NCBI GenBank assembly: GCA_047495785.1
Contig: JBLDXI010000003.1
Coordinates: 3,410,001 to 3,474,000 of the forward strand
DNA: 64,000 nucleotides
Source: Lepidodermella squamata
Taxonomy: Eukaryota; Animalia; Gastrotricha
Direction: 5' to 3'
Below are positions 12,401 through 63,468 of the stretch, piece after piece; the stretch's first letter is position 1; each line of letters starts with the position of its first letter. The notes beneath the pieces are model-generated. The model had not been told where the DNA came from, ran no database searches, and saw nothing but the letters and a program-made list of their open reading frames with translations. Position numbers and translations under genes: made by a program.

Positions 12401-13897
12401 CTATTCATGGCCTAGGTTGGCGATTTTCTCTTGAATCCAACCGATGTAGTTGTCAACCTTGGTGTAAACGCCTGGCTTCTTAGCTTCAGCGCAGCCATAG
12501 CCTGAATGTGATAGGAATAAATAATAAATCCGCAAAAGTGAGTCCGCCAGGCAACTTACCGAATGAAACGACACCATACAGCGTGAAGGTTCCAGTTTTA
12601 GGGTTCTTGTAGACAAGAGGACCACCACTGTCACCTTGGCAAGCGTCAGCACCGCCATCCAAAATTCCGGCGCAAAACTGAGTGAAAAATGAAAATTCAA
12701 AAAATTTAAAATATAATTCAAAATTTAAAATAAAAACAAAATGAACAAATTTTGAAAAATTGAAAGATTGTTAAATCAGCCTTCGAATTCTTACCATATT
12801 CGGTGTCAGGATATTTTGGTACTTTCTGTCGAGCTTCTTGCAACGAGCTTGAGTGATAAAATTGACCTTGACGTATCTCAGAACCGAGCTTGGCTCGCTG
12901 CGGCTTTTCTGGCCATAGCCCGAAACTATGAGTTCAGCTTTGTCCTTCAGCGTTTTCAGCATAGTGCTCGAGCGCGGCAGGCAGATAGGAAGGGCGTTCT
13001 ATGAACAAATAAAAAAATTATTCATTTATTTGGCAGTGAACAAATTGCTAACCTTGGTGAAATCAACAGGCGATTCCAATTCGATGAGGCCAATGTCGTT
13101 GTTGTACTTCTTTCCCTTCCCTAATAAATAACAAAATTGAGAGAAAATTCGAACAAAAAAGGAAAACTTACTCCAATCCTTATGAGGAATAACGCGCTTG
13201 ACTTTGCGAATAATCTCCTCAGCTTCGCGGCCGGTCTTATTAGATTTTCCGATGTGAATTGTAATAAATTCCACCTTAATTTTCCTGAAATCGAGTCATA
13301 AGTAAAAATATAATTCCATTCATTCATAGCTTACTCTGTGTCCAAGCAATGAGCTGCAGTAAGCACGAACCTTCAAGTAAAAAATTCGTTACTTTAAATA
13401 ATGTATTATTATTTTAAGAATAATTTACCTATCGGTGATTAGGCTGCCTCCGCAAATAGCGGCGCCTTTGTAGACCATCAGAACCTGAGATTACAAAACA
13501 AGTTGAGATAATTGTAGATAGAAGAGCAAAAATTTCGTACCTGCCACGGGAAGAATTCATGCTTGATCTCTTTTCCGCCGACGATGCGAGCAGTATCAGA
13601 CTCGAAGCTGTAGCCACTGCCGTCGTCTTGCTCATCAGACGGCGCTGCGAGGTCGTCGACATCGTAATCGGACGTGGTTGTTTGGCGCCTATCGTCGACA
13701 CTTTCACCTTCATCACCGCCATCAACACCGACATCATCAGGTTCCACGGCAGGTTTATCGATCAAGGCTGACACGGGGGATCCGCATTTGAGACCGAAAT
13801 CTGATGGCCTCAGCTTAGCCCTTTCTTCGTCGCCATCATCGAACGCAATAGCTGCGCCGATGAAGAGCAGCTGGATGCAAAACAACTTCATAAGCAT
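12401..13897 (-). CDS. Trypsin-like serine protease (S1A), copy 1, 8 exons
   Basis: Exons 13897-13541, 13484-13429, 13370-13335, 13284-13172, 13120-13053, 12998-12795, 12677-12560, 12501-12401; all GT-AG and phase-consistent. Signal peptide, acidic propeptide with CG, R|[25 protein letters not shown] (Asp189), PGVYTKV. Confidence 0.93.
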
Positions 13898-15030
13898 TTT
13901 TTCAAAGATTAATTGATGAAAATATTAACTCGTGTGAAGCCGTATTTAACGTGGATTTGGCGCCAAAAATCGTTTGTTTAACACGTGCCGCTACAAAAAA
14001 GGTCTGTTCCTTTGCTAAGAGCCATTCGTTTTGGGATCCAGTTGTGACAGCGTCCTATTTATTGGCATTTCCTTAATTTATGAACTTCGGTCATCATTAT
14101 CCTATTTCCCTCGATGCGTTAAATGACGCAAAGGACATCCCGTGTTGAGGGGTAACTCGATATGAAAACTCACGAATTCGCTTTGGTTGGAAGATTTCCA
14201 GTATTCAGAATCCAAAAAGGTGTCTTTGTTTTACATTAGACAGTTAATAAGTAGGGTTTGGCGAAATATTTGACATCGTGAGATTTTGATACCGCTTTCA
14301 AGATCAATGAGCGCGGAGTCAAACGATAGGTCGATAGTTGTCAGGGTTGCTGAGAAAACGGGCTTCAAAGTGTACAGTTGAAAATTGCTAATTTACAAAA
14401 CATGCGCGCATGTTTTTTATCGCATCAATTAATGTTTCACTGCGCAATATATTCTGATTTTATTTTCTTATGCGCAGTCGAGATTTCTTGGAGGAATCGG
14501 AGGGGCGGAATTTTGCGACATGTTCAAATGATCTATATGAGGCTTTCCACGTCGATTATCCTTTTCGGCGACACTTTGAGACTTCCCGTCTTTTGAGGTG
14601 CAATTGGGCCTCAACAAAAATTATAGGAATTCACAATTTGTCCCACTTCAAGTCAATACACGCTTTGCCATTTGCTGGAAAATACAGTAGAAAATTGGCC
14701 AAGCCCCACTTTTCACTTGTTAACGGTCATTTTACGTCGATCAATGTTATTAGCCGATCGATTTTCAGGAACATAGGAACATTACTTTCATCGGTTTCAA
14801 ATTAGCGAATATATCAGATCTCGGTATAAGTATATCGGGGGTAAAGATCTGAACGGATTTATTTGAATAAAAAATTTGGTGAACCAGCTGAAGCGATCGA
14901 TGCACAGTTTAAAATTGTATTGAACTTCATTTGAAACGGTAATTTCATCCAATTAATCTTATTACAGACAAGTAGTCAACAATCTCTAGAGTTATGAAAG
15001 CTCAGTTTTAAACATGATTTACAGGATCAT

Positions 15031-16911
15031 CTATTCAAAGCTCAAGTTGGCGATGTTCTCTTGAATCCAACCGATGTAGTTGTCAACCTTGGTGTAAACA
15101 CCTGGCTTCTTAGCCTCGGCGCAGCCATAACCTGGAATCAATAGGGATGATTATAATCCAATACTATTCTCCGACTATATTTTACCAAAAGAAACGACAC
15201 CATACAGCGTGAAGGCTTGAGTTTTAGGGTTCTTATAGACAAGAGGACCACCGCTGTCACCCTGGCAAGCGTCAGCACCGCCATCTAAAATGCCGGCGCA
15301 AAGCTGAAATGAAATAGAAAAAAATCAAGAATATATACAGCTGAACTCAAATTCTTACCATATTCGGTGTCAGGACATTAAGGTAATTCCTGTCGAGTCT
15401 CTTGCAACGAGATTGAGCGATGAAATTGACCTTGACGTATCTCAGAACTGAGCTTGGCTCGCTGCGGCTTTTCTGGCCATAGCCCGAAACTATCAGTTCA
15501 GCTTTGTCCTTCAGATTTTTTAGCATAGTATTCGGGCGGGGCAAGCAGACAGGGAGGGCGTTCTGGAAACATAAACGGAGTGGATATTCCAATGCCCAAT
15601 TTTTGATATTTGTACTTTGTACTTCAACTGCTTTTCGCCTACGTAATATTCGGAATTTTTGATCAAAATATTCTGCATTACAAGCTGAGCAAGAACGGTC
15701 TAGAAAGCTGAGATTACTTTGCTCGATCAATTTTCCTGGCAAGCCAAATGAAATTGGGGCTGGAAAGCTGAGGAATCCTAAAAGGTCCTGAACCTTTTGG
15801 ATCGAACTTTTGACAATAGGAAAAGATTCCTGATTTTACCAGTTTGAAATTTGATGAGGCAAAGTTATCTCAGCTTTCTACTGATGATCTATCCTCTAGT
15901 TAAACTATGATTCTTACTCAGTTTCAGAAGGAGAATAAGCCGTATAAGTGCGAATATAAAAAAACGCGTAATTAATCAAGTTTAACGTGTACATATAATA
16001 ATAATTATAATATAATGACCCACACATTTTCAGAACTTCTTCAAAAATGTTCAATAAATGAAAACCTTGTTGAAGTCAACTGCCGCGTCCAATTCAATGA
16101 GACCAATATCGTTGTTGTGCTTCTTTCCAACCCCTGAATCAACAAAAATGAGGCGAAATTAGAAATGAACTGATAAACTTACTCCAAGCCTTGTGTGGAA
16201 TCGCTCGTTTGACTTTGCGAACTATCTCCCCAGCTTCACGGCCTGACTTCTTCGATTTTCCAATGTGAATTGTAATGAATTCCATCTTAAGTTTCCTAGG
16301 ACCGAGACATAAATTCAAGATAGTTTCCAAACATTCAATACTTACTCTGGGTCCAAGCAATGAGCCGCAGTTAGCACGAACCTTTGAGGAAATATAAATA
16401 ATTTAATTTTTTTAATTTTAAAAAATAGTTTACCTATCAGTGATTAGAGTTCCCCCGCAAACAGCGTAGCCCTTATGGGCCATCAGAACCTATCAGTGAT
16501 TGGAAAAATAGGCAATAATTATTGATTGATAAATCGAACGCTGCGTACCTGCCACGGGAAAAATTCATGATTGATCTCTTTTCCGCCGACGATCCGAGCA
16601 GTATCAGCCTCGAAGCTGTAGTCACTGCCGTCGTTTTTCTCATCGTACGGTGCTGCGACGTTATCAGCGTCGTAATCAAAGTTTGCTCTAATTTGCCGCC
16701 TATCGTCGAGACTTTCACCATCATCTCCGCCTTCTTCGGCGCCGTATTCAGGCTGTTCAGCGGCTCTATCACTCAATGCAGTCACGGGGGTTCCGCATTT
16801 GAGACCAAGGTCCGACCTATCCCTTGCCATTTCTTCGTCGTCATCAGTCAACGCAATAGCTGAGCCAATGAAGAACAGCTGGAGACAATACAACTTCATC
16901 AGCATTTTCAT
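15031..16911 (-). CDS. Trypsin-like serine protease (S1A), copy 2, tandem paralog, 8 exons
   Basis: Exons 16911-16549, 16489-16434, 16381-16346, 16295-16183, 16133-16066, 15562-15359, 15303-15186, 15131-15031. Internal exon sizes (56/36/113/68/204/118) are identical to copy 1; catalytic motifs intact. The start may be ATG 16905. Confidence 0.93.
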
Positions 16912-17760
16912 CAATTAATCGTTGGCAAAATTAATTAGTGAGGCCGTTTTTAAGATGGACTTGGCGCGAAAAGCCTCTTGCTACACCTGCCGCCACAGAA
17001 AAGGTCTGTTCCACTGAGAGCCTTTTAATTAGGGATCCAGTTGGGATACCGTACGTTTAGTTACATCTCGAGTAGTGGCTTTGAAATGACACATGGGACT
17101 TCGAAACCTATTTCTGGTATCTAGAACATATTTCGACACCTGACAATGGGGGGTAACACGACCGATTTTTTCTGGTACAACGCTATGGATAAAATCGTTT
17201 TTTGCGCGTTTCAGGAGTCCGGCCAGGAGTCTAAGTGATTTCAAAATTAGCCATAAATCAAGGTAAAATCATCCGGACTTGCGGAAACCAGCATTCGATA
17301 GTCCAAGAACTCCTCTACATCTCTGTATTTGCCGAAAATTTTCTAAAAATTCACCTGGCTGGCAGAGTAGGAAAACCCGAAAAGTGGCCGATTTTAGGGC
17401 GGGATGCTCCAGGTCATGATGTCGGCCGTGACAATGACCCGCAATTCTAGGTCGATTTCTCACATTTATTTTCAAGCTAATTATTTCGTTCTTCGCACCA
17501 ATAAATTGCTGAAAAACGAAAAATTCCAACCATTAAAAAATCCGACACGTGTCTTAGTCTCACCGAGTGATGAATGAAACAGCGGTATGAATCAACAATC
17601 GCACGAAAAAATTCGTCGCGTGTGTCAAAGCGCGCGTGCTTCACGCATTTTGTTTTTCAAACTCAAAACACTGATTTATTCTACCGATTTCACTGAAATT
17701 AAACAAATTCTGAACCAAATTCATTTTTCGAATATAGATTAACCACTTATTGACTGTAAA

Positions 17761-26197: not shown

Positions 26198-27365
26198 TTT
26201 AATTTGTATCGCGGAGATAGGTGAAAAACGTTAAAATCGATAACGTTGATAGATGAATATGAATGAAGTGAACGGTGCTGCTGAACTTGTTGTTTTTCAC
26301 TCGTTTATAAACAGGCCGTCGTCGGCGCGTGAACGATTACTGCGGCAAAAAAGTGTTGCGTAATGCGTTTTGCCGCCAAATCGCGCGTGCACGTCGCGAT
26401 CACGGGGCAGCTTCCTTGTAGTAGTGTGAAAGAGCACCAACGCGTGCGCTTACATTAAGGGCACAAGTCTATTTATGAATCAATCACCTGGTCGTCTGCC
26501 ACACATAATTTAGCCGTAAAATGAGAGCGCTTGCCATTCACAGATTTACAACTCACAGGCCACTAGAAAATAGAACAGTACCTAATTAAGATCAAGAAAT
26601 TCAGAAATTTAGAAATTTAAAATGAAAAATTCGCGTCGCTGCCTTCACGAGTTGACCGAATGCTGAAGCTAAGGCTTGAACAAAATAATCACCTGAACTC
26701 TTCGAAGGTTTCATTTTCCATCGAAGCGAAAAGCTTTACTTAATTTTCCGATCCATTCCATACGAGAAATAACCAAACCATCAATTTCGGTAAAAAAATG
26801 GAAGACAATCTTAGTAAAGCTTAAATTTTCGCGCCATGTTTGAAAGTAATGGCATAGACATTTTTTAAAAAGATGGCAAAGATGGCGGATGCGGGCGCGG
26901 GAAGTTGAAACGTAATAAATGAACTTCCGAGGCTTCCGGGATTGAATAAAACAATCTCGACTTGCTTGGGATGGTGAAATCCTGCTGAAGTGTTAAAATG
27001 AAACCATCAACCTCGGAATTCGATGAAAATTCTTCCATGATGCGCGAAATTAATCAAACTCTCAATCGAATTAATTTGTTTTGCTGTCCGATCGGCAATT
27101 CCGAAATTCCTCGTTGAATATACTGATGATTAGACCATACAAAAAAGACATCTCCCATACGACAATTCTGAATGAATTTATTCATATTATTTTCGATATA
27201 CAGATTTTTAATTAATAGCAATCTTTCCGTTAATCTTTCATGTTAAATAAATGATGCAGCGGTAAATAATGATCATAACATTTCGAATGTAGGTCACGCA
27301 TTTGACCTCAATGCGCACGCAATAAATTATCAAATAATATCGATATAATTAACACATCAGTTGAT

Positions 27366-39784: not shown

Positions 39785-42391
39785 CTAATGGTGATGATAA
39801 TCGGCGTAGGGGTTGAAGTTTTCGCGACCCTGGTAGTCTCCCGAATAGTCGTAAGCGCCGAAGAAGCCCTGGCGATGGTCGTCGTAGTAGTAATTCTCCC
39901 TCTCCTTGCTCAATTCACACTGCCCGCCACTGACAGACTTTGCCTTTTTCTCACGCTTCGGCGCTGATTTCTTGTTGTAGCCGGACTTTTCTTCATCGTA
40001 ACTGCGAGACTTTGGCTTGGTGTAGCTTTTCTTCTCGATTTTAGGGTGGGACTTCTTGCCGTACGAGGCCTTTTTCTTCGGAGCCGAAGCCGACTTGCTG
40101 TAGCTGCCGGACTTGGAGACAACTTTCTTGCCCTCGTACTTTTTACCTTGAGTCTTCTTGCCCTTACCCTTGCCCTTCACAGAGGCAGATTTCGATCCTT
40201 TGCTATAGCTACCGGAGCCGTAGCTCTTCTTAGGCTTTGCGGCCTTTTTTGTAGGTTTTTTCGCCTTAGAGTAAGAGGCAGCCTTCTTGCCATACTTGCT
40301 GGGTTTCTTGTTTTGCTTCGGGGCGCTGTAAGACCGATCCTTTGAGACGGAGACAGATTTCCGGTAGTCATGAGTGCCGCGGGAAGCATTAGCATTGGCG
40401 CGTTTGCGGCCGTACTTAGCTCCAGCCTTGCGGGCGTGGGCAGAGTCGGAGACGGAAGTCTTCTTGTTGCTGGCCTTGTACTTGCGGGCATTGTGGGCAG
40501 CGCGGGAGACGGAAGCCGAGGCACGGCGTTGGTGGGCCTTGTTGCGCTTCGCCGACTTCGAGGCAGCAGCGGCAGTGGCAGCCGAGTCGTAGGACGCATA
40601 GGCAGCGGAGTGGGCCTTGCGAGCCTTCTTGCCGCCGGCCTTCTTTCCGGTCTTTTTGCGGGTAGCAGTGGTGGCAGCGCCATCAGAGTCGTAGTAGCCG
40701 AACTTCTTGGAAGACTTTTCTTCGCTGAACTTGTTTTCCTTGTTGTGGCCCTTGTCGGCGAAGCCCTTCTTCTTGAACTCAACCTCATCTCCAGTCTTGT
40801 CATGGTCCTCGTCCTTGGTGAAACCAGCCTTGCGTTGTGTGTGAGATTTACCGAATTTCTTGCCTCGCTTGTGCTTCTGAGCAGCAGCAGCTGCGCCAGA
40901 GTTGTAGGACGCCTTGCCGAATTGCTGGACAGCTCCAGAACCACTGGCGCGGAACTTGCGGCCACGGCGCTTGCTGCCGGCCTTCGATTTCTTTTGGTCG
41001 TAGGCAGAGTCGCGCTTGCCAGCCGAGGCGTAGCTGGCTGAGGCGCGTTCGCGGTTGGCAGAGCGGTTCTTGATAAACTTGCGCTTGTCGCTGGTCTTCT
41101 TGTTGTGGGAAGCATCGGCCGAGGCGTAGTCGACGGCACCGAATTCAGCTGCAGCTGAGGCGGATTTGCGGTCGTAGATGTCGCGTTTGTCGACTGAGAC
41201 AGAGTACGAAGCCTTCTTACCTCTTTTGCCTCCCTTCTTGTAACCTTCTTTCTTGAATCCTTTAGTACAAAAATATTTAGATTTAGAAGATAGAGTGGCT
41301 ATTGGGTGTCACCTGACGAACCAGCACGCTTCTTATTGTAACCACTTTTCTTGACTTCTTTCTTTCCCTCGCCTAAATCAATTCTTCATTAGAATATAAC
41401 TGGAGAAGTGTTATACTATTTCTTACTCTTAGACACTGACTTCTTGTAGCCGAACGAGCGATTGCCGTAAGAGACTGACTTGGAGACAGACTTGGAGGCC
41501 TTCTTTCCACCATAATGGCCAGATTTCTTTTTCGCCGGAATGGCCTTCGGCTTCTTGCTCTTGCCGTATGAAACCGACTTCGTATCAGATTTGCTGTTGG
41601 AAACCTTCGGCTTCACGACCTTCTTGCTCTTCTTCGGCGCCTGCTTCTCCTTAGGAGCAGCTTCAGGGGTGTAAGCGCTCTTCAGACGGATGGCACTAGG
41701 GTTAAATCCGCCCTTGCTTGGCTCTTGATAACCGCTGTTCGATCGTTCACTGGCGCTAGCAGATCGGCTGTCGCTCTTCTGAGCCTGGCGTGTCTTGTGG
41801 TTAATTGCCCCACGACGACGACCTACAATAAATTATATGAATCATTAATTATTTAATTTTCCCGTGTGGATCCGAAAATTCCCAGCTTTGGTAAAACGAG
41901 AAAGAAAAATTGAGAATTTTCAGCTCAAATTTTGAATAAAGATTGGAATTTGAAATGGGTTTTTCAAAGTGGAACCCTGAATTTGAGGCTAAAAAAGGTT
42001 TTTCGAGGTTAATAATATTGAAAAATTCGTCTTGACCTTAATTTCCGGTCTAATTAGGTCACCTAGGAAATTGTAAAAAAAGCGGCTCGATTTTGATTAG
42101 AGTGACTCACCATGTTTGGCTTGGTTTTTCTCCTCGCTGCTGTCGATGCTGGTTGAAAATGAGCCAGAGTTGTACTTGCGGCCTCTCAGCTCTAGCAAAT
42201 GTTTGCGAGCTTTCACAATATCGGAGAGATCGGACAAGCTGGTCGAGAACGAAACCTCAGTATGAACCTTGCGTCCTTTCTTCGCAAATGCTGTTGGCAG
42301 AAAATTTGAGACGAAATTGAACAAAAAATCTCAACTAACCATCAACGCAAGAAAACAGCGCTAGCGCGAGTAGCGCGAGATAAAAACGCAT
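39785..42391 (-). CDS. Secreted Lys/Ser-rich protein, 720 aa, hairpin-family member with Tyr/His tail (exons 42391-42340, 42290-42111, 41822-41427, 41372-41313, 41259-39785)
   Basis: All four introns are GT-AG and phase 1; total 2163 nt. The last exon carries the FKKKGFADKGHNKENKF core and ends ENYYYDDHRQGFFGAYDYSGDYQGRENFNPYADYHHH. Confidence 0.8.
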
Positions 42392-43685
42392 AATGCCTAG
42401 AGAATTAAATCCGAAATTTCGGGGAAAATAAGTTGTATAAAACTGTCTCTAATCGAACTAAAACATAAGTCTAGTTGGCTGATAATTTTTTGAATGAACA
42501 GATTTTTTCGAATTAACCACGTGCCGGTGTTGCGCAAGCTGAAAAATTCCGACCATTGAAAACAACGCGTGCTCAGCTTGTTTTTTAAAAAACGGCGGGC
42601 GGGTTGTAATTACAACAACAAGAATCGGCGCGCGATTGCTTTCGGAACAGTTGACCTGGTTTTTATGCTGTGTTTACGCAGGTGAAACCGATAATTGGAA
42701 TTCAGAAAAAAATTGGATAAAAATTACGCAATGGAGACGAAATTAACCCGAAAAATGATCTGCCTTTTTCTGATGCCAAAGATAATTTATTTTTAGCTAC
42801 ATACCTGGTACAATCGTATAGGTAAATAACTCTTATTTCTTTGTTTTCCAGACAGCTGTTATCGGAAAAATCCCTGATTTTAACTATTGATACTTAAAAT
42901 CGATGTCGTTCTGCAAGATTTAACCGACACATTATCGAAATTGTGATGTTAAATTCCGAATTATTCAACCTAACAGAGTGAGCTCTCAAATAAAAAATAA
43001 AGACTTTGACTCTAACGTGACGATTCTCATATCCGTGACCCCATGATATCCGTGGGTCACGTGAGTCGGGTCACGGATCACGGGTCGCGGGCTTGGACCA
43101 GTTTGACCTATATTTCTGATTAGCTCTCCTTTATGGAACCTTTATTGAATCGACATTGGAAATTTTCAACTGTGGAAATCTTAAATTCTTTTCCGGAATT
43201 CATTACAAATCCGTTTTTATTGTTGGTTATTAGGTTACCAAAGGTCGTTAAAATTTTTGTTGAAAACAAGCTGTGCACTATGTCAGTGTAAAATTATATT
43301 TTCTTGGGCTAGCAGTTGAAATTCGAACTGAAATTGGCTACTTTTGATTATCGGCTCTCTATAGGTTGGCGGCTTCTTCGAATCAGGCTTTGATATTACA
43401 ATATTTTACTCTTTCGAGGAAGCCTGATGAAATAAAGGCATTAACGGAAATCAAGGTCAACAAAAAGCATTGGTATAATGTTGCAATTTTCTTTTATTCC
43501 TGTGTTCGAAAATATTTGATTAGTTCCGAACATAGAATCTCACCATAATAGCTCATATATAATTGAAATAAAAATCATTCAATATTCAAAATCGATAAAT
43601 CGATTCGAAACATGCATCTCTGTAATTTTGATCACAAATAAATCGAAAAATATCGCTCGAATCAGTCGTGACTAGTGTTTGGATT

Positions 43686-45581: not shown

Positions 45582-46096
45582 CTTTCAGATAAATATGATG
45601 AGACTGAAATTAAATTAAAAAAAATTGAAATGAAATACCTTCTTATTTCGAATTAGTTATTCCTGAATAATGATTTTTTGTAGTAAAATCAAGCGTTTTT
45701 ATTAGTGAGCCAGTGACGGTGTTGCGTCACCGGGCTGCGATCGGTTTTTCTCTCACGAGTCGCGCGAATGTTGAAATTTTTCAGTCGAAACGCGTGCTTT
45801 TGCAAAATTGTTTTTCAAGGCTAAGTAAATGCGTTGTTTCATTCATTAGGTGATCACATGGACACGTGGCGGCTAATGGTCTAGAGATACAATAACACAG
45901 GTTGACCTATTTTATTTTAGGGAAATTTGAACCGGTTTCGGAAATTAATTCAACTCACAATTGTCGCAGACAGTTTTTATTTCAAATAAATTAAAAATTA
46001 TTTCAATTTTATTTAGATTTTAGATGCTCTTCATTAGTTAGTCCTCGACTTTGATTTTTATTCCTCTCCTTTATTTTCTTGTTAGATATCGGAATA
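45582..46096. promoter_or_regulatory. Probable bidirectional promoter between head-to-head secreted-protein genes
   Basis: ATGs at 45581(-) and 46097(+) are 516 nt apart; contains ttgcgtca 45722, acgcgtg ~45790 and cacgtg ~45863. Confidence 0.5.
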
Positions 46097-47191
46097 ATGA
46101 AGGCAATTTTAGCTATCACCGTTGCCATTTTGCTGGCTTCGGCCGGTGAGTTGTCATTTTACGCTTGATTTATCTGATTTTATTCCGTTCCAGTCTTCGC
46201 CGGAGGAGCAAGGAAAGGCGGTAACAGAGGTCGCAAGTTGTCATACTCAGCATCAGTCGACAAACGCGACACCTACGACCGCAAATCCGCCTCAGCTGCA
46301 GCTGAATTCGGTGCCGTCGACTACGCCTCGGCCGACGCTTCCCACAACAAGAAGACTAGCGACAAGCGAAAACTGATCAAGAACCGATCGGCCAACCGCG
46401 AACGCGCCTCGGCCAGCTACGCCTCGGCTGGCAAGCGCGACTCAGTCTATGAACAGAAGAAATCCAAGGCTGGCAGCAAGCGTCGTGGCCGCAAGTTCCG
46501 CGCCAGTGGTTCTGGAGCTGTCCAGCAATTCGGCAAGGCGTCCTACAACTCTGGCGCAGCTGCTGCTGCCCAGAAGCACAAGCGAGGCAAGACATTCGGT
46601 AAATCACACACGCAACGCAAGGCTGGTTTCACCAAGGACGAGGACCATGACAAGACTGGAGACGAGGTTGAGTTCAAGAAGAAGGGCTTCGCCGACAAGG
46701 GCCACAATAAGGAAAACAAGTTCAGCGAAGAAAAGACGACCAAGACCTTCGGAGAAGCCAACTCCGATGCTGCTGCCACCACTGCTACCCGCAAAAAGAC
46801 TGGAAAGAAGGCCGGCGGCAAGAAGGCCCGCAAGGCTCAATCTGCGGCCTATGCGTCCTTCGACTCGACTGCCGCTGCCGCCGCTGCCTCGAAGAGCGCG
46901 AAGCGCAACAAGGCCCACAAACGCCGTGCCTCGGCCTCCGCAGCCCGTGCCTCGCAAAATGCCCATGACTTCAAGGCTAGCAACAAGAAGACCGCCGTCT
47001 CCGACTCTGCCCATGCCCGCAAGGCTGGAGCTAAGAAGTCGAAAAAGCACGCGAAAGCTAATGCTTCCCGTGGCACGAAGAAGTCGAGAAAGTCGGAAAA
47101 TGCTCGCATTAATACTGTTCCTGCCAAGAAAAAAGTTGCCCATTCTTTCGATAGCGTCGCCTCGGAGCTAAGCAACTCAAGTGATTTTTGA
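46097..47191 (+). CDS. Secreted Lys/Ala/Ser-rich hairpin-family protein, 348 aa (exons 46097-46145, 46194-47191)
   Basis: MKAILAITVAILLASA G|gtgagt ... ttccag|TC TTC GCC; in frame with track ORF 46238-47191; DKGHNK core. Confidence 0.9.
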
Positions 47192-47445: not shown

Positions 47446-47750
47446 TACCGTAGTGCCCGAAATGTTGGGCCTGTCCTTAATTTTGTTCGAAACAAGTCGA
47501 AACCCTGTCTTATATTTGAGGCCTGACCTTTATTATTTCGAGGAGAAGGCGATCATGAGGCGTAGTAGAATCCGAATTCCTTTAAACTATTTCTCAATTG
47601 ATCAAAATCTATCATAAAATGATGACACACGCGTGGGCGACCTGACTATTACTTGAGGCCTGACCGTTATTATTTAGAATGACCCTTGGACCCCGCCGTC
47701 TTTTATTTGAGGCGACTTTTATACGAGAGTAACTTTCGGGCAGTACGGTA
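47446..47750. mobile_element. Tc1/mariner-pogo-type MITE (second family)
   Basis: TIR TACCGTAGTGCCCGAAA / TTTCGGGCAGTACGGTA (1 mismatch), TA flanks, internal repeats tgaggcctgacc. Confidence 0.75.
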
Positions 47751-48532
47751 TAGGCAATCCGCTTCGACGTCGCAGAGCACCGTAGGTATAATATCACTGA
47801 CATTATTAGCCCATTTCGGTTAATTGGGTAAAATCCATAGAAATCTCAACGGGTAAAATCAGACGTTTTTTTGCAGAACATTATCCGTATCTTTCTAGCT
47901 TCTGGATTGTCCGAAACTCAAGTAGGTAATTAGATCCCACTTTTCATGCAAAGGTTCAAGTAGTGACTTTTCGATTTTCGATTTGGGAAACTTGACCCCT
48001 CTGCTAAATAAAACATTTCCAAAATTAATTAACGCTATAATGTTCCACATGCTTCAACCGTAATTAGAATAGCTTCATTTCTGCGAACTAGAGTACATTT
48101 CAAGATCCAACATTCAAAAAGAGCGGACCAACGGACTTTTCCAATAATCATTTCCTTAAGATTTAGTCGTTTCGGCTCACTCGGAAAAAAGGTTTTTCAC
48201 CAGTTGAAATTGCGGCTATTTTATAGATTTCACGTTTTAGAACCTGAATTCACCTGATCGGGGCAAATTTGTTAAAAATGAAAATATTTCCAATTTCTTC
48301 AAGCGTGATGTGTTGTTTACAATCAGTAAATCAAATCGCGTGATCAACCTTGATGAAAAACATGCTTTCCACGCCGTTTTCCACACCGGAATCGCGTGCT
48401 CGCTCGGTAGTTTTCCCGGTTGCGCAACACGTCGATTGATTGGATATAAAACCAACCCGGAATCAAGACCAATATCATCAAGTTTTAATATTTCTATATT
48501 TATTATTCAATTAAAACATATCTATTCCTAAA

Positions 48533-49854
48533 ATGCGTTTCGCTCTCGTAGCAGCAGTCGCTGCCCTGTATTGCGTTGGTAGGTCTATAAATTTTCAATT
48601 ATAGCCAGTGATTTAATTTTTTGGATTCGATTTTCAGCCGCCATCTCTGCTGATGCCTCGGCTTCAGTTGACAAGAAATCGGCGTCTGCCTCGGCTGGCA
48701 TTGACAACGTCAAGAAGACTGGTCTGACCTTCATCCACGGCAAGCGCGGTGGTCGTCGCGGTGGTAACGGTGCCTCAGCCTCTGTCAACAAGAACTCTGC
48801 CTCCGCCTCGGCTGGCGACAAGCGTGGCAAGCGCGGATTCTTTGGTCGCCGTCGTCGCGGCAACTTCGCTTCTGCCTCAGTTGACAAGAATTCCGCCTCT
48901 GCTTCAGCTGGCAATGGTGGCCGCCGTGGCGGTCGCTTCTTCGGCCACAAGGGCCGTCGCGGCAACTTCGCCTCAGCCTCAGTTAACAAGAACTCCGCCT
49001 CCGCTTCGGCTGGCAACGGTGGTCGCCGTCATGGTCGTTTCTTCGGCCACAAGGGTCGTCGTGGTGGCAACTTCGCCTCGGCTTCAGTCAACAAGAACTC
49101 CGCCTCCGCTTCGGCTGGCTCCAACAAGGGCCGCAGGGGCCACAAGGGCTTCGGCCGTCGCCACCACGCTGGTCGCTACTTCGGCCACGGTCGCCGCCGT
49201 GGAGGAAACTTCGCCTCTGCCTCGGTCAACAAGCGCTCCGCCTCGGCTGCTGCCGGCAAGTTCCGCGGCCGCCGTGGTCATCATGGCAAGTTCTTCGGCC
49301 GTCGTCACGGTGGTCGTCGTGGTGGCAACTTTGCTTCCGCCTCTGTAAACAAGCGTTCCGCCTCTGCTGCCGCTGGCAACTTCCGCGGCCGTCGTGGTCA
49401 CGGATACTACTTCGGACGCCGTCATGGCGGTCGTCGCGGCGGCAACTTCGCCTCGGCTTCGGTTAACAAGAACTCTGCTTCGGCTTCTGCTGGCAACTTC
49501 CGTGGCCGCCGTGGTCACCATGGCAAGTTCTTCGGTCGTCGTCACGGTGGTCGTCGTGGAAGCTTCGCCTCAGCCTCCGTCAACAAACGCTCTGCCTCTG
49601 CTGCCGCTGGAAACTTCCGTGGCCGTCGCGGTCACTTCGGACGCGGTCGTCGCGGTAACTTCGCCTCTGCCTCGGTTAACAAGCGATCTGCCTCTGCCTC
49701 GGCTGGCAATGGCCGCCGTGGTGGTCGCTTCTTCGGCCACAAGGGTCGTCGTGGCAACTTCGCCTCGGCTTCAGTCAACAAGAACTCCGCCTCTGCCTCG
49801 GCTGGCTCCAACGGCAAGCGCGGTGGATTCAAGCACGGTCGCCGTCACTTCTAA
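48533..49854 (+). CDS. Secreted 420 aa Gly/Arg/Ala/Ser block-copolymer structural protein (exons 48533-48578, 48638-49854); true frame absent from the ORF track
   Basis: MRFALVAAVAALYCV G|gtaggt ... ttttcag|CC GCC ATC TCT GCT; open to TAA 49852-49854. Eleven copies of ASASV(N/D)K(N/R/K)SASA(S/A)AG separated by GRRGGRFFGHKGRR-type blocks. TATAAAA at ~48445. Confidence 0.9.
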
Positions 49855-50188
49855 TTAACTCAAATCAAAATCTGTAGTTATTTATCGAGTGAAAACTGTA
49901 TTAGCAATTTGATGATCTGAGATGAATTTTTTTCGAATTCTTTATTTTCCGAAGATCTGAAATAGTGGCGAGTTAATAAAACCTAAGAATCATGTACTAC
50001 ATTGAGTTTTCTTGCGAAGTGCCAACAATGTTACACAAGCAATCTCGGTTGAGAATTGAGAAAATTACGCAAGTTGCCGATTTTGATTTTTCAAAAGGCA
50101 ACACTCACCGTCGAGCTGCCTGCGGATACCACAGGATTAAAATAATGTTGGTTATTGGTAGGCTCAAAGTGAATAAGTATAATTTATA

Positions 50189-50374
50189 ATTTTCGTTCAT
50201 CAGCATCTGCTTGAAAACAGGCGACTGGCTAGCCAGAATCAAACGATGGGCCTGAATTACCTCGCCCCCGATAGCAAAAGCCACGTCGCAATCGATGCTT
50301 CGAGTGAACATCCATTTGCTGTACAAATGCTTTGCGGTGGTCTATTGACGTGATTTTACTCGAACCCTCATTCA
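50189..50374 (-). pseudogene. Truncated, frameshifted copy of exon 1 of the adjacent BTB gene
   Basis: IDHRKAFVQ...SIDCDVAFA...VIQAHRLILASQSPVFKQMLMNEN is nearly identical to the first part of exon 1 of the BTB gene (~52430-52590). A 5-nt deletion (ATGGATGTTC vs ATGGAATCGATGTTC) shifts the frame, and homology stops after MNEN. Confidence 0.8.
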
Positions 50375-51104: not shown

Positions 51105-52615
51105 TCACGAATATCTCCTCTCAGAGAGAAGGATTTCAACTTTTCCATTGGGTCGATCTTCCTCGAGTCGAAAAGCAGAGTTAGGATACTTCTGGATAGA
51201 TTTTTCGAACAGCTGTTTTTTGTTCATAGACGCTGGACACTCGAACTTGGAAAGGCGCAGCCTCATCTTATCACTTACTTCGCGGAAAACCGTGATTTTC
51301 ACTAGTATGAGGAAGCAAAATGATGAGAAATTTGCTATTGGATGTGGGAAATTTACCAAATTTCAACTTTTGAGGTTTGAAAACAATCAACTGTCGTCCG
51401 ACCTGCGTTGCCAGGCTGTAACCCAATGTTGTCCAAACTGAGCCATTCATGGACGTTCCGATCATGTAATCAATGCTTTCATTGTCGTATATCGATTCCT
51501 CTGCGTTCCCGAAGAGACGAAATCGCATTGAGTCAACAACACAAGGTTCAGCTAACTGAACAATGAGAGAACCATTCGGCTTGAACATGCGGCAATTGCC
51601 AAAGAATCCCAGAATCGAAGATGATCGCAATGTCAAGTCATCACCAGGAAAATCGCAAAGCAGTGTTATTGGATGGCGGAAGTCGTCGCTACTAACAGTT
51701 GCTCCGTTCTCAACTGTTGCCATATTGGTTGTTGCCAAGGCTGAGTTACGAGGTTGTCTGCCGCTGTTGTCGTCCGGCGTCTTACCTAAAGCGTTGAAAT
51801 CGATTCCACTTTCGCCAAGCATTTTGCACAAAGCTCCCATTTCGGCGAATGAAATTCTACCAGGCGGCGGCATGACGACGTACTCAAGCCGAACCTTTTC
51901 GAGGATTTTCGACAGATTCACTTTTGGATTGGCTTCATGCCAGTTTTTCAGAGCCATCAAAACTTCCAGTTCCGGCACGAAGAGGCCGTCCAAATCGAAA
52001 AGGTAGATTATGGCTTGTTCAGATAATCTTTTGAAGTTGGGGTCTTTCAGAATTTCTTCAGAGTGTAAGCACGCGAAGGTGGCGCATGATTCTAAAATTT
52101 CAGCATCGTCCAAAAACAGCGCCGCTAATAACAAGTCGTAGAATAATTTCATGTTCACGCTGGCCTATAGAAATTCAATCGGTTAGCCTCAACAGCTCAG
52201 CAAATAAGCAAATTTTTACCTGGAAAATTTGTTTCAACTCGCCCATTAAAGCGTCCACTTGATATTCATGCGCAATTTTGAGAATTTCGACGCTTTCTGC
52301 CGGCGACAGTTCGTCAAACGAAATAAAACCAGTGTAGAAATACTGAACGAATGCTTTGAAAGCTGGGGCTGTCTTGCCAGGCAAGTCGATTGGCTTATCT
52401 ATCGTCGATCGTGCCTCGCGGAAATTTTCGTTCATCAGCATCTGCTTGAAAACAGGCGACTGGCTAGCCAAGATGACACGGTGGGCCTGAATGACTTGGC
52501 CCTCGACAGCAAAAGCCACGTCGCAATCGATGCTTTGAGTGAACATCGATTCCATGTGCTGTACAAACGCTTTCCTGTGGTCTATTGTCTTGAGCCCAGT
52601 AGAAGCCTCGGCCAT
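51105..52615 (-). CDS. BTB-BACK-discoidin (F5/8C) protein, BTBD9-like (exons 52615-52220, 52164-51357, 51301-51105)
   Basis: BTB motifs DCDVAFAVEGQVIQAHRVILASQSPVFKQML and FVQYFYTG; BACK-like FKRLSEQAI...VPELEVLMALKNW; NMATVENGATV and IVQLAEPCVVDSMRFRL resemble the BTBD9 discoidin region. Divergent, so orthology is not asserted. Confidence 0.8.
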
Positions 52616-52973
52616 TTTTATACTTGTTGCTTATTTAATATATAATTCAATGTATGTAATGAATTGACTGGGTGATATTTCAGAAGCAACAGCAAAAAAT
52701 AAGGTCGCGCGTGGTTTGATGAAAAGTAGTAAAATATGAATCATTAATATATGAATCATGATAATGTTGGTTATAATGACTACACACTATAGCCTACCTG
52801 GTCCACCATAAGACGTAATTATGCCCAAATTATTTTTATTTTTATTTTATATTTTATTTTTCAAAAAAATGTATACCAAAAATCCTCGTTCAATTCTCGA
52901 TCGATTGGTCAAAACCCGGTCGACGACCGATAAAATCAATCGATTCTGTGGGGCTTGAAGTGATCTTGACCAA

Positions 52974-54304: not shown

Positions 54305-55403
54305 CTAGTAGTAGTGCTTGCCACCCTTCTTGCCTCCCTTCTTGCCGCCCTTCTTGCCGTAGCCACCATCGCGATAGCTGGCAGATTCACCGGCATGGAA
54401 GTCGTGGGTGGCGCGTTCAGCCGAGGCGGAGGCACGTTTGCGGCTGTGCTTGGCTCCAGCCTTGCGGGTGTGGGCAGAGTCGGAGACGGCGGTCTTCTTG
54501 CTGCCGGCCTTGTAGTCGCGGGCGTTGCGCGAGTCACGGGCAACGGAGGCCGAGGCGCGGCGGTGGTGGGCCTTGTTGCGCTTCGCCTTCTTCTCAGCAG
54601 CGGCGGCCGAGGCCTTCGAGTCGCGGGAAGCGTAGTCGGCAGAGTGGGCCTTGCGGGACTTCTTGCCGTGGGCCTTCTTGGCGGTCTTCTTGCGGCTGGC
54701 AGTGGTGGCGGCGCCGTCAGAATCGGCCTTGGCGAACTCTTGCGAGCCGGACTCGAAGCTGAACTTGTTGACCTTGTTGTGGCCCTTGTCGGTGAAGGTC
54801 TTCTTCTTGAACTCGATCACCTCGCCGGCCTTGTCGCGGGCCTGGTCCTTCTGGAAAGCAGCCTTGCGCTTGTGGTCGGCGCGGCCGGTCTTCTTGTTGC
54901 GCTTGTGCTTCTGGGCAGCGGCGGCGGCGCCAGAGTCGGCGTAGGCGTTGTCGTGCTTGGCGAAGGCAGCCGAGTCGCTCTTGCGGATCACGCGGTTGCG
55001 GCGCTTGCTGCCGGCCTTGGACTTCTTCTGGTCGTAGGCAGAGTCACGCTTGCCAGCCGAGGCGTAGCTGGCCGAGGCGCGTTCGGCGCTGGCCGATCGG
55101 GTCTTGATCAGCTTGCGCTTGTCGCTGGTCTTCTTGTTGTGAGAAGCATCGGCCGAGGCGTAGTCGAAGGCACCGTTTTCTTGTTCAGCAGAGGCGGACT
55201 TGCGGTCGTAGGTGTCGCGTTGGTCGACCGAGGCGGAGAAGGAGGCCTGTTTGCCACCCTTCTTACCACCCTTGCCTTTTCCATAGCCGCCAGCGAGGAC
55301 TGAAGCGCAAAATCATATATTTTCCGAGATATTGAAAATTACGCAAATACTCACCAGCCGACGACAAAAGCGCGATAACAGCAATAGCGAGAATAACCCT
55401 CAT
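54305..55403 (-). CDS. Secreted Lys/Ala/Ser-rich hairpin-family protein, 347 aa (exons 55403-55355, 55299-54305)
   Basis: MRVILAIAVIALLSSA G|gtgagt ... cttcag|TC CTC GCT GGC GGC. GGKK repeats at both ends, DKGHNK centre, ends KHYY. No Pro, Cys or Trp seen in the protein. Confidence 0.9.
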
Positions 55404-56533
55404 GGTTAAATAAAATCAGAAGAAATGAATAGATTGATCACAACAGCTTGATGAATAGGTTGAGAAAATACACCGGTCTTAAATATCGCGATAAGAGATG
55501 TGTTACGCAAAAGCGCCGCAAAAATTATTTCCACGCGCTTATTTTTTTGGCGCGTGTTACTTTGCTGCGCTCAGCGCGGCCCAGCGTGGGAAAGGAGAAT
55601 AATGTTTTCAAACAAGCTAAAAAAGGAGATCCACCTTAATCCAATTTTTCATTCCTAATTTTACAAATCCCTCGCAATGAGCTGTTCAGTTCCTGATTGC
55701 CAAACTTGCCTTGATGATGTTGCGTTGAAGCACCGTAAAAACGCTGAATGATAAGAAAACAAGTCGGTGTTCAGATTTCACAAATCAGCAACGTTTCCGT
55801 GCCACAATTTTGTTTTTTTGAGGAGAATCTATCATTTATCTGCTTGTTATCAACCAGGGTATCAAATGTAGCATTAGGTATTTGTAAACATGAAATGGGC
55901 ACATGGGAAAGTAAAAGGTTTTGCAACAAATGCTGAAGTTCACCAATCGATTATTTCCTGTTGTCTCTTGGACGAGTTACCTGCCGCATTGCTAGGTATT
56001 TCTTCGTCTGGTGTTGAAACTCAAAAAAAATATCGGTTGAATACAAAGATGATTCAGATTGGCCTACATTTAAATAGGTCACCGTTAAATATGCTTAATT
56101 TCGGAATGTCATCAACACACTTTTTATTGCACTCTCTTTCTTTAGACCGTACAAGTTGCGGGGTCAAACTGAAAGTTCACCTAATAATCAATGGAAAAAT
56201 AACAATTGTGATGAATCCTGTCCGCTATTTGGCTGATTTTTCTAAAATGCCGTCCAGAAATAAAATTCGCGCACGCGTTTTACAACGGAAACGGTGTCAA
56301 TTACAGCCACGTGACCGGCATCACCGCTTGTTCTTTTCTGGGTTTAAAGTTTAAATTTTTTGTTTACTGGGCCGACACGCGCTTCCGACGCGTGCGCGAG
56401 TGAGGCGATGCATAAAAATTGCGCAACAGGTTCTACACGAGTTTTAAAAGGCCGTACGCTTCTTAAACGTTTTCATCTATTCCTGCTGATAGTGAAATTA
56501 TTACTTTTTCAATTTAAATCCTACTGAAGAAAC

Positions 56534-58238
56534 ATGCGGATTTTTTTCCCGATCGCCATTGCGGCGCTATTCTGCGGTAACTTCAAAACATTTTTAAACA
56601 TTCTAAATAATTTAAAAAAATTAGGAAAAATTAATGGAAAATTTATTTAATTAATTCACGAGTGATTTGCGCTTTCGGACACCTCAATCAATTTTCATTT
56701 TAATTTTTTCTTATTTTAATTCAATTTAAAACGGAATTTAATTTGAAATTTTAATTTTTTCTGTAATTCAAGTTGCTGTTTCGGCTAACAACCGTTACGA
56801 CTCTGAAGATTCGCGTTCCTACTCTGACTACTCGGAATCGCGGCCGCACCACGGTCGTTACCGGAAGCACGGCTACAGCAGCGGCAGCGACAGCTACTCG
56901 CACGGTTCCGGCGGCTATTACCGCGGCTACAATGCCCGCGGAAACCCGATCAGGCTGCGCAACGCCGGGCCTGAGCAGCCTAGCGAGGCTAAGCCCGCCG
57001 CCATCCCGGCCGGTGGTGAACTGGACGTTGAGAAGTTCAAGGAATCTGGCAAGACGAAGATCGAAGCTGACGCCAAGTCCCTCGTAGCCAATGGCCAGAA
57101 CGTCCAGACTTTCGACAAGGCGGAAACCTCGAAGAAGACCGCCGAGGAGACCAAGGCGTCTGCTAAGGCCAAGTCGGAGAAGGAGAAGCTCGACATCTCC
57201 GTCAGCGCCACTGTTGAGGACAAGAAGTCGAAGAAGGACGCGAAGAAGTCGTGGAAGAAGAAGGCCAGCCACCAGCGCAAGAACTACAACAAGCACTCGC
57301 GTTCTAGCCAAGCGTCTACCTCTGCCAAGTCCAGGAACGAGAAGGCCAAGATCCGCGGCCGTGGCAAGTTCAACAAGCACGGCAAGAACAACCAGGAGTA
57401 CGAGGTTGACGCCGGCACTGAGAAGAAGCGCGATACTGACGTCATCACGTTCAGCCGCAACACCGACAAGGGCCACGATAAGACCTGGACCAAGAGCAAG
57501 GGCAAGACCAATACCGAGGACGCTGAATCTGGTGCTCTGAGCGGTTCGATCAAGACGAAGGCGTCCAAGAAGCACGCTAAGGCGAACAAGAAGGGCAAGA
57601 GCAAGGGCACGAAGAAGGGCTACTCGGCTGCCTCGAGGTACGCCAGCTACTCGTCCGACCAGCACGACAAGAAGCGGAAGCAGAAGGCCCGCCTCAGCGC
57701 CGACGTCAAGTACAACAAGGGCAAGAAGTACGCGAGTGCCAGCTACGAGAACAAGAAGAAGGCGAGCGAGAGCGCCTCGACGAAATCATCGAAGAAGGCG
57801 AACAAGGCGAAGATCGCGGCGAAGGATAAGTCCGTCTCTTACCACTCGAATTCCGAAGTTTCTATCAGCACCAAGAAGCAAGTCGCCCCGAAGAAGAAGG
57901 CGGTTAAGAAGCCTTCGAAGTCCGTAACCAAGGAATCGTCTGGTTCTCATTCGTACGTTCCCAAGAAGAAGCAACCGAAGAAGCAACCGAAGAAGGCCGC
58001 CAAAAAGCCGAAGAAGTCTGTTAGCAAGGAATCATCTGGCTCGCATTCGCCTGAGCCGAAGAAGCCCCAGCCGAAGAAGCCGAAAAAGCCGGTGCCGAAG
58101 AAGAAGCAGTCATCAAGCGGTGACAGCAAGAAGTCGAGCTACGAGTCGTGGAGCTACGACGGTAAGAAGGGCGGCAAGAAGGGCAAGAAAGCTGCCAAGG
58201 GCAAGAAGGGCGGTGCTTTCTTCGACTTGGATCATTAA
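56534..58238 (+). CDS. Secreted Lys/Ser-rich hairpin-family protein (subfamily B), 502 aa (exons 56534-56576, 56773-58238); true frame absent from the ORF track
   Basis: MRIFFPIAIAALFC G|gtaact ... ttcaag|TT GCT GTT TCG GCT; open to TAA 58236-58238. Tyr/Ser/Gly/His N-terminal block, ITFSRNTDKGHDKTWTK core, KKP tail, ends FFDLDH. Confidence 0.88.
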
Positions 58239-61109: not shown

Positions 61110-61190
61110 TCGCGTGCCAAGGAAAGACGCGTGCCGCGCGCGAATCCACCGGGGTTGCGCAACACCTGAGCGGCGGGCGTTTTATAAGAA
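61110..61190 (+). promoter_or_regulatory. Putative promoter module of the 61283 gene: CGCGTG x2, TTGCGCAA, TATA-like
   Basis: cgcgtg ~61111 and ~61129, ttgcgcaa 61155-61162, tttataag ~61181; the same combination recurs before other cluster genes. Confidence 0.55.
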
Positions 61191-61282: not shown

Positions 61283-63468
61283 ATGCGGGCATTGCTTACT
61301 ATCGTCGTAGCGGTAGCGCTGTTCGGTGAGTTTTAAAGACGCTTTTGCCGCGTTTCTTTATTCATGTTTTCCGTTCTTTTATAGCTGCCCTCACTGACGC
61401 CCAGCGAGGCCAGAAACCGGATCGAACACCAAAGGATGATACACCAAGGGAAGATCGTACTCCTAGGGAAGATCGTACTCCAAGAGAAGATAGGGCACCG
61501 AAAGAAGAACGAGTGGTTCCTGATGCTCCGCAAGAAGAGCGTTCTCCCAAGGAAGAACGACCTGCTAAAGAAGAACGGCCTGCGAAGGAAGAACGACCTC
61601 CCAAGGAAGAACAACCTGCTAAAGAAGAACGGCCTGCTAAGGAAGAACAGCCTGCGAAGGAAGAACGTCCTGCTAAAGAAGAACGGCCTGCTAAAGAAGA
61701 ACAACCTGCGAAGGAAGAACGACCTCCCAAGGAAGAACAACCTGCGAAGGAAGAACGGCCTCCGAAGGAAGAACAACCTGCTAAAGAAGAACGGCCTCCG
61801 AAGGAAGAACGTCCTCCCAAGGAAGAACAACCTGCGAAGGAAGAACGGCCTGCTAAAGAAGAACAACCTGCGAAGGAAGAACGTCCTCCCAAGGAAGAGC
61901 GGCCGCCGAAGGAAGAACAACCTGCGAAGGAAGAGCGTACTGTTCCAAGAGAAGAACGTGTTCCTGACGTTCCGAAGGAGGCTGCTCCGAGGGAAGAACG
62001 ACCTGCGAAAGAAGAACGTGCCGCGAGGATTCCAGTTGAGCGGACCGAAAGGAAAGAGATCGATCGTGAGGTGAGGCCCGAACGAGAAGAACGCAGTCGT
62101 GTGGTGCGGCCGGAAAGAACAGAGCGGCGCAAACCTCAGGATGAGGTGAGGTACAAGTCGAAGGGCCGCAAGAAGTATAGCGACAGCGACAAGGAGGTGA
62201 GCGCTGGTTATTCGGCCCGGGACACCGCTCAACGACGCAAGGCGAGAAGGAGCAGCTCAGAGCGCACCAAGGCGGCTGCGAAGAAGAAGTCGGCCAAGGA
62301 GAAGCTCGACATCGGCATCAGCGCCACTATTGAAGACGCCAAGTCGAAAAAGGACGCGAAGAAGTCGTGGAAGAAGAAGGCCAGCCGGTCGCGTGGTTCA
62401 TTAGCCAAACACTCCGATTCGTACAAGGCGTCTGCTGCTGCGAAATCCAGGAAGGAGGCTGCGAGGATCCGCGGCCGTGGCAAGTTCAACAAGCACGGCA
62501 AGTTCAACCAGGAGAATGAGATCGACGCCGGCACTGAAAACACCCGCAATACTGATGCCATCACGTTCACCCGCAATACCGACAAGGGTCACGATAAGAC
62601 CTGGACCAAGAACAAGGGCAAGGTCAACACCGAGTTCGGCGAAGGGGCTGCCCTGAGCGGTTCGATCGAGACGAAGGCGTCGAAGAAGAGCGCCAAGGCG
62701 AGCAAGAAGGGCAAGAGCAAGGCCGTCAAGGCGAGCAAGTCGTCTGCCTCGGAGTACGCCAGCTACTCGTCGAACCAGCTCGACAAGAAGCGGAAGCAGA
62801 AGGCCCGTCTGAGCGCTGATATCAAGTACAGCAAGGGCAAGAAGTACGCCAAGGCTAGCTACGAGAACAAGAAGAAATCGAGCGAGAGCGCCTCGGCCAA
62901 GACGTCGAAGAAGGCCAACAAGGCGAAGTTCGCGAAGAAGTCCAAGTCGGTTTCGTACAAGGCCAAATCTGAAGCTTCGTACAAGAGCAAGAAGCAAGTC
63001 GCCCCGGCTAAGAAGAAGGCTATCAGGAAGTCGAAGTCCGAATCTGAGGAATCATCTGGTTCTAATTCGGCGCCGAAGAAGCCCCAGTTCAAGAGACCGG
63101 TGAAGGTGGGAAAGAAGTCCAAAAGCGAGGAATCTTCCGGTTCCCATTCCTCAGGTTCAAAGAAGCCTCAGTTCAAGAGACCGGTGAAAGTGGCGAAGAA
63201 GCAAGGCAAGAAGTCCGAAAGTGAAGAATCTTCCGGTTCAGATTCGCCTGCTCCGAAGAAGCGACAGCAGAAGAAGTTCATCAAGAAGCAAGCGAAATCG
63301 AAGTCTGAAAGCGAATCCGTCTCATCGGCGCCGAAAAGGAACAAGAAGTTTGCCAAAGAATCTGAGAGCGATTCGCAAGAAGAGTTCAGCGGCAGCTACC
63401 AAGACAAGAAGAGCAACAAGTTTGGCAAGAAGAAAAACCGCAGCAGCTTCTTCAGCGATCTTCATTAG
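61283..63468 (+). CDS. Secreted 708 aa protein: (KEE[R/Q]P[A/P])n polyampholyte, hairpin-family core (subfamily B) and Ser/Glu/Lys tail (exons 61283-61325, 61385-63468)
   Basis: MRALLTIVVAVALF G|gtgagt ... tttatag|CT GCC CTC, in frame with the track ORF; core closely similar to the 56534 gene; ends FFSDLH. Confidence 0.9.
61549..61938 (+). repeat. Coding tandem repeat, 18-nt unit encoding KEE(R/Q)P(A/P), ~21 copies
   Basis: Read directly from sequence and translation. Confidence 0.95.

Follow-up and report, generated by a model that had tools for sequence, protein, structure and literature searches.

A putatively secreted protein of Ala/Ser modules and cationic Gly-periodic linkers, encoded among neighbouring basic genes in a gastrotrich genome

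One segment of a stretch of gastrotrich DNA analysed at its full length of 64,000 nucleotides (the window) raises two questions: whether it encodes a protein that is absent from the list of open reading frames and, if so, what such a protein might be for. A preliminary description, made from the letters alone, took the segment to hide a silk- or suckerin-like block copolymer in a frame without an in-frame ATG, and to encode a self-coacervating material.

Reading of the sequence gave a two-exon gene of 420 codons, from an ATG at 48533 to a TAA ending at 49854, which are the limits originally given; the features are collected in Table 1. Exon 2 comprises 404 codons without a stop or a Met, and the phase-1 intron keeps it in register with exon 1. 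The frame was missing from the list because exon 2 has no Met and because there is an in-frame stop inside the intron, so the hidden frame had been correctly diagnosed. A secretion signal is found as a hydrophobic leader, a putative signal peptide, encoded by exon 1.

Table 1. Positions in the window of the module gene and of the features associated with it
Feature	Position	Strand	Details
C/EBP-type bZIP palindrome GTTGCGCAAC(AC), predicted	48419..48430	+	114 nt upstream of ATG; also at six neighbouring secreted basic genes
TATA box	48443..48451	+	15 nt downstream of bZIP site
Two CGCGTG (Hairy-type, N-box-like) hexamers	48326..48400	+	196 and 140 nt upstream of ATG
Exon 1	48533..48578	+	46 nt; 15 codons (MRFALVAAVAALYCV) and 1 base; start codon and hydrophobic part of putative signal peptide
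Intron	48579..48637	+	59 nt, phase 1, GT-AG; GTAGGT donor, TTTTCAG acceptor; in-frame stop at 48580
Exon 2, coding part	48638..49854	+	End of signal peptide, 11 modules, 11 cationic linkers, TAA
Ala/Ser modules (n = 11, 48 nt each)	48652..49806	+	Starts 48652, 48769, 48865, 48967, 49072, 49210, 49330, 49447, 49564, 49660, 49759
Gly/Arg/Phe/His/Lys linkers	48700..49851	+	15-30 aa each, between and after modules; a Gly every 3-4 residues
AATAAA, candidate polyadenylation signal	49975..49980	+	From reading of the sequence
Same C/EBP-type element at six other genes	26353-26363, 42527-42537, 45719-45729, 55500-55510, 56419-56427, 61154-61165		Mostly 14-16 nt before a TATA-like box
ATGs of further basic genes	8201+, 26197-, 42391-, 45581-, 46097+, 55403-, 56534+, 61283+		Similar short phase-1 signal-peptide exon

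When the module copies were compared, 4, 2 and 15 variable columns were found at codon positions 1, 2 and 3 respectively, third positions varying in 15 of the 16 codons. No two copies are identical in DNA, and pS (0.53), pN (0.08) and the resulting dN/dS of about 0.09 serve as a description and not as a test on independent samples, the copies being mutually related. The pattern of variation was reversed in the other plus-strand frames and all three antisense frames contained 9-12 stops, which answers the objection, foreseen at the outset, that the opposite strand or another frame might be the one in use. The DNA pattern of the module matched 11 times within the 64-kb window as against 0.00 in shuffles. 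Codon bias is strong, with a share of C/G-ending codons in two-fold families of 0.89 (0.37-0.65 in four control coding stretches) and CGY codons for 64 of 66 Arg residues, and this fits bulk synthesis; the neighbouring basic genes discussed below have a similar share (0.77-0.93). This two-exon, plus-strand coding gene is real, its module is under purifying selection and its linkers are variable in length.

Transcription was assessed with run X1, which is RNA only by guess and behaves as RNA: its depth falls to 0-1 over the intergenic region 47561-48466, and it contains a joint matching the predicted 48-nt intron of neighbour 46097 to within an allelic shift. At the module gene the depth was 98 at 48508 and 48514, just upstream of the ATG, and 0 at 48586-48600 in the intron; coverage spans the 5′ UTR and both exons and skips the intron. 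Over repeats, depth sums many contigs and paralogues and is no measure of expression level. The module gene is transcribed. Contigs from runs X3 and X5 end their alignment at 48637, two of them carrying 15-21 further letters. The call for RNA-seq to confirm the splice was thus answered in part, by RNA-like coverage of both exons and none of the intron; the 48578/48638 splice is supported indirectly, by the zero intron depth and the contig ends, the joint itself being absent among the alignments displayed. Other linker variants appear in loose contig ends, so alleles or paralogues exist. Contigs of X5, a 2021 run under another organism label, cover 48637-49793 with copies about 88-97% identical, so the family occurs in another population or species as well. 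Upstream of the gene, 47490-47735 is occupied by a short interspersed repeat built of CTTATATTTGAGGCCTGAC-like units; it reaches a DNA depth of 10-20-fold in run X2 (2024) and differs in length between haplotypes.

The encoded protein has the block-copolymer architecture that had been proposed, modules alternating with Gly/Arg/Phe/His linkers. There are exactly 11 modules, each of 16 residues, with the consensus F-A-S-A-S-V-N/D-K-N/R/K-S-A-S-A-S/A-A-G. The constant-length repeat therefore stood, while the exact 16-mer of the original title is present in only four copies: Phe is first in nine and three end in SASAAAG. Twelve of the 16 positions are invariant and substitutions are confined to positions 1, 7, 9 and 14. 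Ala or Val occupies positions 2, 4, 6, 11, 13 and 15 and Ser positions 3, 5, 10, 12 and 14, so that the Ala/Ser alternation, already noticed on both sides of the NK dipeptide, flips parity across N-K-x. A chain reversal that keeps all the alanines on one side needs just such a change of parity, and N/D-K suits a type I′ turn. Both a β-hairpin and a β-arch fit the pattern.

The linkers, of 15-30 residues, include both of the spacers quoted originally as being of variable length. They consist almost entirely of Gly, Arg, Phe, His, Asn and Lys (32% Gly, 34% Arg plus Lys) and make up 56% of the chain. Acidic residues are, as had been remarked, almost absent: exon 2 has 5 D+E among 404 residues, against 93 K+R. 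There are also 0 Cys, 0 Pro, 3 Tyr, 1 Leu and no Gln, so with 0 Cys and 3 Tyr no cross-linking chemistry is evident. Gly spacings of 3-4 residues account for 46 of 71 gaps, compared with about 19 expected, and the linkers may be read as Gly-periodic, flexible polycations. With a net charge of about +88, 35 aromatic residues and what is probably a freshwater animal, self-coacervation as first suggested is doubtful; complex coacervation with a polyanion would be more plausible.

Structure prediction was carried out with AlphaFold2. With exon 2 alone, one of the five models (pLDDT 65.6, pTM 0.64) showed all 11 modules as a six-residue strand, a three-residue link and a second six-residue strand, with a pLDDT of 70-90 on the modules; the other four models were of low confidence. 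A five-module fragment gave the same strand pattern (pLDDT 56.4). The reversal that had been placed at the NK dipeptide is thus reproduced in both predictions, in agreement with the parity flip. The best structural match of the full model was the curli protein CsgA (8c50; Z 20.9, rmsd 7.2, 252 residues aligned, 4-11% identity) and the next had a Z of 13.0, all matches being β-solenoids. The fragment matched a springtail antifreeze protein (Z 9.3) and then a beetle antifreeze protein and the CsgA fibril (both Z 8.6). Foldseek found no match to the predicted model in the PDB, and a shape search of the Atlas returned three unannotated bacterial or viral models (TM 0.5-0.65), which are uninformative. 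AlphaFold2 is known to turn near-perfect repeats into confident but unrealistic β-solenoids (PMC11795689) and the rmsd to CsgA is high; within these limits the models weakly suggest, as a lead, that the modules stack as CsgA-like strand-arc-strand rungs.

Homologues were sought with exon 2 alone, the 15 codons of exon 1 being too short to search. No match was obtained in Pfam (no family at E 0.1), in a word-indexed search of targets 0.55-1.75 times the query length, in an exhaustive phmmer search of 1.84 billion representatives, in the ESM Atlas by features with the whole or part of the protein, in PDB sequences and by exact look-up, or in metagenome contigs, queried both with the protein and with the DNA pattern. 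Blank results in such searches are weakened by low complexity, composition filters and the scarcity of gastrotrich data; the module protein has no detectable relative, and an absence of relatives is not implied.

At least eight further genes in the window encode secreted, Lys/Arg-rich, mostly Cys-free, low-complexity proteins, and in the seven basic genes modelled by script the signal-peptide exon is 43-49 nt long. An element T-T/G-R-C-G-Y-A-A-C lies 107-166 nt upstream of seven of nine secreted basic genes and of none of seven controls, and is present in 6% of background windows; these statistics are inflated, since the genes used for the test include six in which the motif had first been noticed by eye. 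It passed a blind test, a site at 42529 predicting a gene start that was found at 42391. All six matches to RCGYAACAC in the window lie upstream of secreted basic genes on the sense strand, and in five of the seven genes a TATA-like box follows the bZIP-type site after 14-16 nt. The genes at 8201+ and 46097+ have no element of their own, the latter sharing an intergenic region with 45581-. The element agrees with TKNNGYAAK/C, the C/EBP consensus reported for the promoters of silkmoth chorion genes (PMC4639761). The CGCGTG hexamers are weakly specific, being found at eight of nine basic genes and also at four of seven controls. Grainyhead sites, considered as a cuticle marker, were rejected: 18 were found in the window and 17.5 expected, with no enrichment. 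The bZIP-type site shared by seven genes suggests co-expression in one cell type, and thus that the module gene and six neighbouring secreted basic genes form a co-regulated set; on this promoter evidence the seven probably build one extracellular material, be it egg shell, cuticle or glue.

Several of these neighbours are related to each other. Three paralogues with a mirror-patterned core lie at 46097-47191 (+), 54305-55403 (-) and 39785-41308 (-); each has an N-terminal module-like motif with six extra residues in the turn and the same parity flip. BLASTP of the module against this motif gave E 0.33, which is not significant and is suggestive only, and no homologue was found for 46238-47188. 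The region 39785-42391 (-) is probably one multi-exon gene for a long Lys/Ser/Ala-rich secreted protein, with its ATG at 42391, a signal-peptide exon and further exons through 41416-41832 and 39785-41308, the exon joins being predicted. Two paralogous Lys-rich secreted proteins are encoded at 56534-58238 (+) and 61283-63468 (+), the latter with 21 copies of an 18-nt repeat at 61549-61934 (six residues, K-E-E-R-P-A type, zwitterionic). The genes at 45581/46097 and 55403/56534 form divergent pairs; the module gene is unpaired.

Elsewhere in the window, whose overall GC content is 44%, a plus-strand frame of at least 2445 codons without a stop occupies 1-7338; it has repeats within it near 5947 and 6463, shows no codon bias and matched no Pfam family. 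At 11300-11842 (+) there is a single-exon secreted protein, lipocalin-like by eye, whose open reading frame (11300-11839) had no homologue at E 0.001 in a large protein collection. Two paralogous serine-protease first exons, ending in a RIVGG-type activation site, lie at 13478-13924 (-) and 16519-16914 (-). A BTB-BACK gene is found at 51271-52630 (-; Pfam BTB 6e-20, BACK 1e-9), and a fragment at about 50105-50330 (-) resembles its BTB exon and is possibly a decayed copy.

Taken together, the observations are best explained by a secreted structural protein whose modules form a thin cross-β core and whose cationic linkers bind an anionic partner, made as part of a co-regulated set from which egg shell, cuticle or glue is built (probability about 0.6). 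The protein would be made with its neighbours by one cell type and secreted. Each 16-mer would then fold back at N/D-K-x, placing its six invariant Ala/Val residues on one side and the serines on the other, and the modules would stack within and between chains, either as a curli-like β-arch solenoid or as stacked hairpins. The Gly-periodic Arg/Phe/His linkers would loop out as a polycationic brush able to bind an acidic polysaccharide, a glycoprotein or a surface, and neutralisation of charge by this partner would lead to condensation and setting. Against stacking, each rung carries a Lys and, in four copies, also an Arg. About two thirds of this reading falls to egg shell or cuticle scales and about one third to the glue of the adhesive tubes.

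The rival that survives best, though it is unlikely, is a disordered secreted polycation with no stable β core, which would condense or cross-bridge anionic secretions electrostatically, in the manner of the basic regions of the flatworm cohesion protein Mlig-ap1, with the module as a neutral spacer or partner-binding site. The net charge, the large share of Gly-rich linker and the low confidence of four of the five models are all in keeping with this. Mlig-ap1 has G/R/K-rich, strongly basic regions that act in cohesion (PMC6410801, PMC8621496), and flatworms are regarded as closely related to gastrotrichs (PMC6468455). A mere spacer, however, would not keep 12 of 16 positions unchanged together with a strictly two-faced pattern and a flip of parity, and the C-type lectin, vWD, TIL and EGF domains of ap1 are absent.

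A role in defence, with the linkers as antimicrobial peptides on the body or egg surface and the modules anchoring or storing them, appears rather improbable. Gly/His/Arg/Phe-rich antimicrobial peptides such as armadillidin exist in invertebrates, and the linkers resemble them in composition and contain 28 dibasic clusters and seven R-x-K/R-R sites. C/EBP factors also drive immune genes, and the putative bZIP site is compatible with immune control. The part that is conserved, however, is the neutral module and not the cationic linker, there are no acidic pro-segments and Pfam gave no family match. The number of furin-type sites does not clearly exceed chance expectation (7 as against 3.9, P about 0.08); some cleavage at them may occur.

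Processing of a prohormone-like polyprotein at G-RR/G-KR into amidated signalling peptides is quite improbable. Gly precedes 26 of the 28 dibasic clusters (46% in shuffles), which is the classical amidation signal, but Gly stands after 21 of them as well, and all along the linkers it comes back every 3-4 residues, so that the G-RR motifs arise from Gly periodicity, which accounts for them better than amidation does. Moreover, the residues that would end up amidated vary (G, R, F, K, H, N), the conserved module is not adjacent to G-dibasic sites, and cleavage would yield many products of 1-3 residues and fall within five of the modules. A wrong frame, non-coding repeat or assembly artefact is largely refuted and scarcely credible: if the species has been called correctly, the assembly goes back to amplified DNA (PMC11660948), and short contigs cannot confirm a copy number of 11, but third-position variation, codon bias, splice signals, promoter elements and RNA-like coverage agree on the plus frame, and parts of the stretch are present in the sequence data of four studies.

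Within the structural reading, a more specific and tentative proposal, with the odds against it, is that of an animal functional amyloid built in a new way: isolated Ala/Ser β-arch rungs would form a curli-like solenoid fibre with a dense Gly-periodic Arg/Phe/His brush, and a battery of other orphan polycations under C/EBP control would be produced along with it. If this is true, no component of gastrotrich egg shell, cuticle scales or glue would have been defined in molecular terms before it, and it would set when polyanions trigger its assembly, with no Cys or DOPA cross-links. A literature search of incomplete coverage turned up no publication in which structural proteins of the cuticle, egg shell or adhesive tubes of gastrotrichs are named. 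With a module short enough to be synthesised and with a promoter signature, the gene makes the composition of gastrotrich materials directly testable. The principle of crystalline and flexible blocks is itself already known; if the module assembles, it would be an independent solution to this design, which silks and suckerins share, and its polycationic linkers are unusual. New here are the C/EBP-type site common to seven genes, the Gly periodicity of the linkers and, weakly, the CsgA-like stacking in AlphaFold2.

How the module protein relates to known systems can now be considered, beginning with the squid suckerins, whose hallmarks are Pro-flanked modules and GGY/GGLY amorphous blocks (PMC11931252). 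Like them it is a secreted block copolymer, in which Ala/Ser/Val-rich, presumed β modules alternate with Gly-rich blocks of 15-30 residues and His is present. Its alternation is comparable only in part to the suckerin one of M1 (Ala/Val/Thr/Ser/His-rich) and M2 (Gly-rich), the module being free of Thr and His and 16 residues long with NK inside. Unlike the suckerins, the protein has no Pro flanks, no GGY, GGLY or GYG and almost no Tyr, Leu or Thr; its module has a fixed internal turn, and its linkers are Arg-rich polycations (G/R/F/H/N/K). Membership of the suckerins or silks, to which the preliminary description likened the protein, was not borne out, the suckerin hallmarks being absent (0 Pro, 3 Tyr) and the search for homology to suckerin, silk fibroin or spidroin giving no Pfam family at E 0.1 and no sequence match, with low complexity weakening such searches.

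The cross-β silk of lacewing egg stalks (MalXB1/2, ChryC1-3) is Ser/Ala/Gly-rich, with a 16-residue unit, a positive net charge and short folded strands (PMC5485732). The module protein shares the composition, the unit length and the sign of the charge, but the lacewing 16-mers are contiguous, whereas here they are isolated by long cationic linkers (period 32-46 aa); there is no Cys/Asp motif and no homology was detected. Curli CsgA, the best match of the predicted model, has a strand-arc-strand rung with small inward residues, comparable to the one predicted here. CsgA and CsgB are, however, bacterial, their Ser/Gln/Asn ladder repeat is absent here (there is no Gln), Pfam gave no curlin match and the structural match rests on a low-confidence model. 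The silkmoth chorion locus is similar in its clustered genes, first exon of about 50 nt, divergent pairs (here among the neighbours) and C/EBP promoter elements (PMC4639761). This is an analogy of layout only: there is no sequence similarity, the module gene is unpaired and the proteins here are Cys-free polycations.

Macrostomum Mlig-ap1 is also secreted and has very basic Gly/Arg/Lys low-complexity stretches (the GRK regions), a compositional likeness only. It contains more than 3,600 residues of basic regions together with C-type lectin, vWD/C8/TIL and EGF domains, whereas the module protein has 420 residues, no domain found, no Cys in exon 2 and Ala/Ser modules. In caddisfly H-fibroin, (SX)nE phospho-blocks are combined with Gly/Arg-rich spacers. 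The alternating-serine blocks between Gly/Arg-rich spacers and the freshwater animal are common to both, but the module protein has no S-x-E site (0 by motif count), no terminal domains and about a tenth of the size. The module protein is thus a member of none of the suckerins, lacewing silks, curli, ap1 or caddisfly fibroins, and would work like a block-copolymer structural protein.
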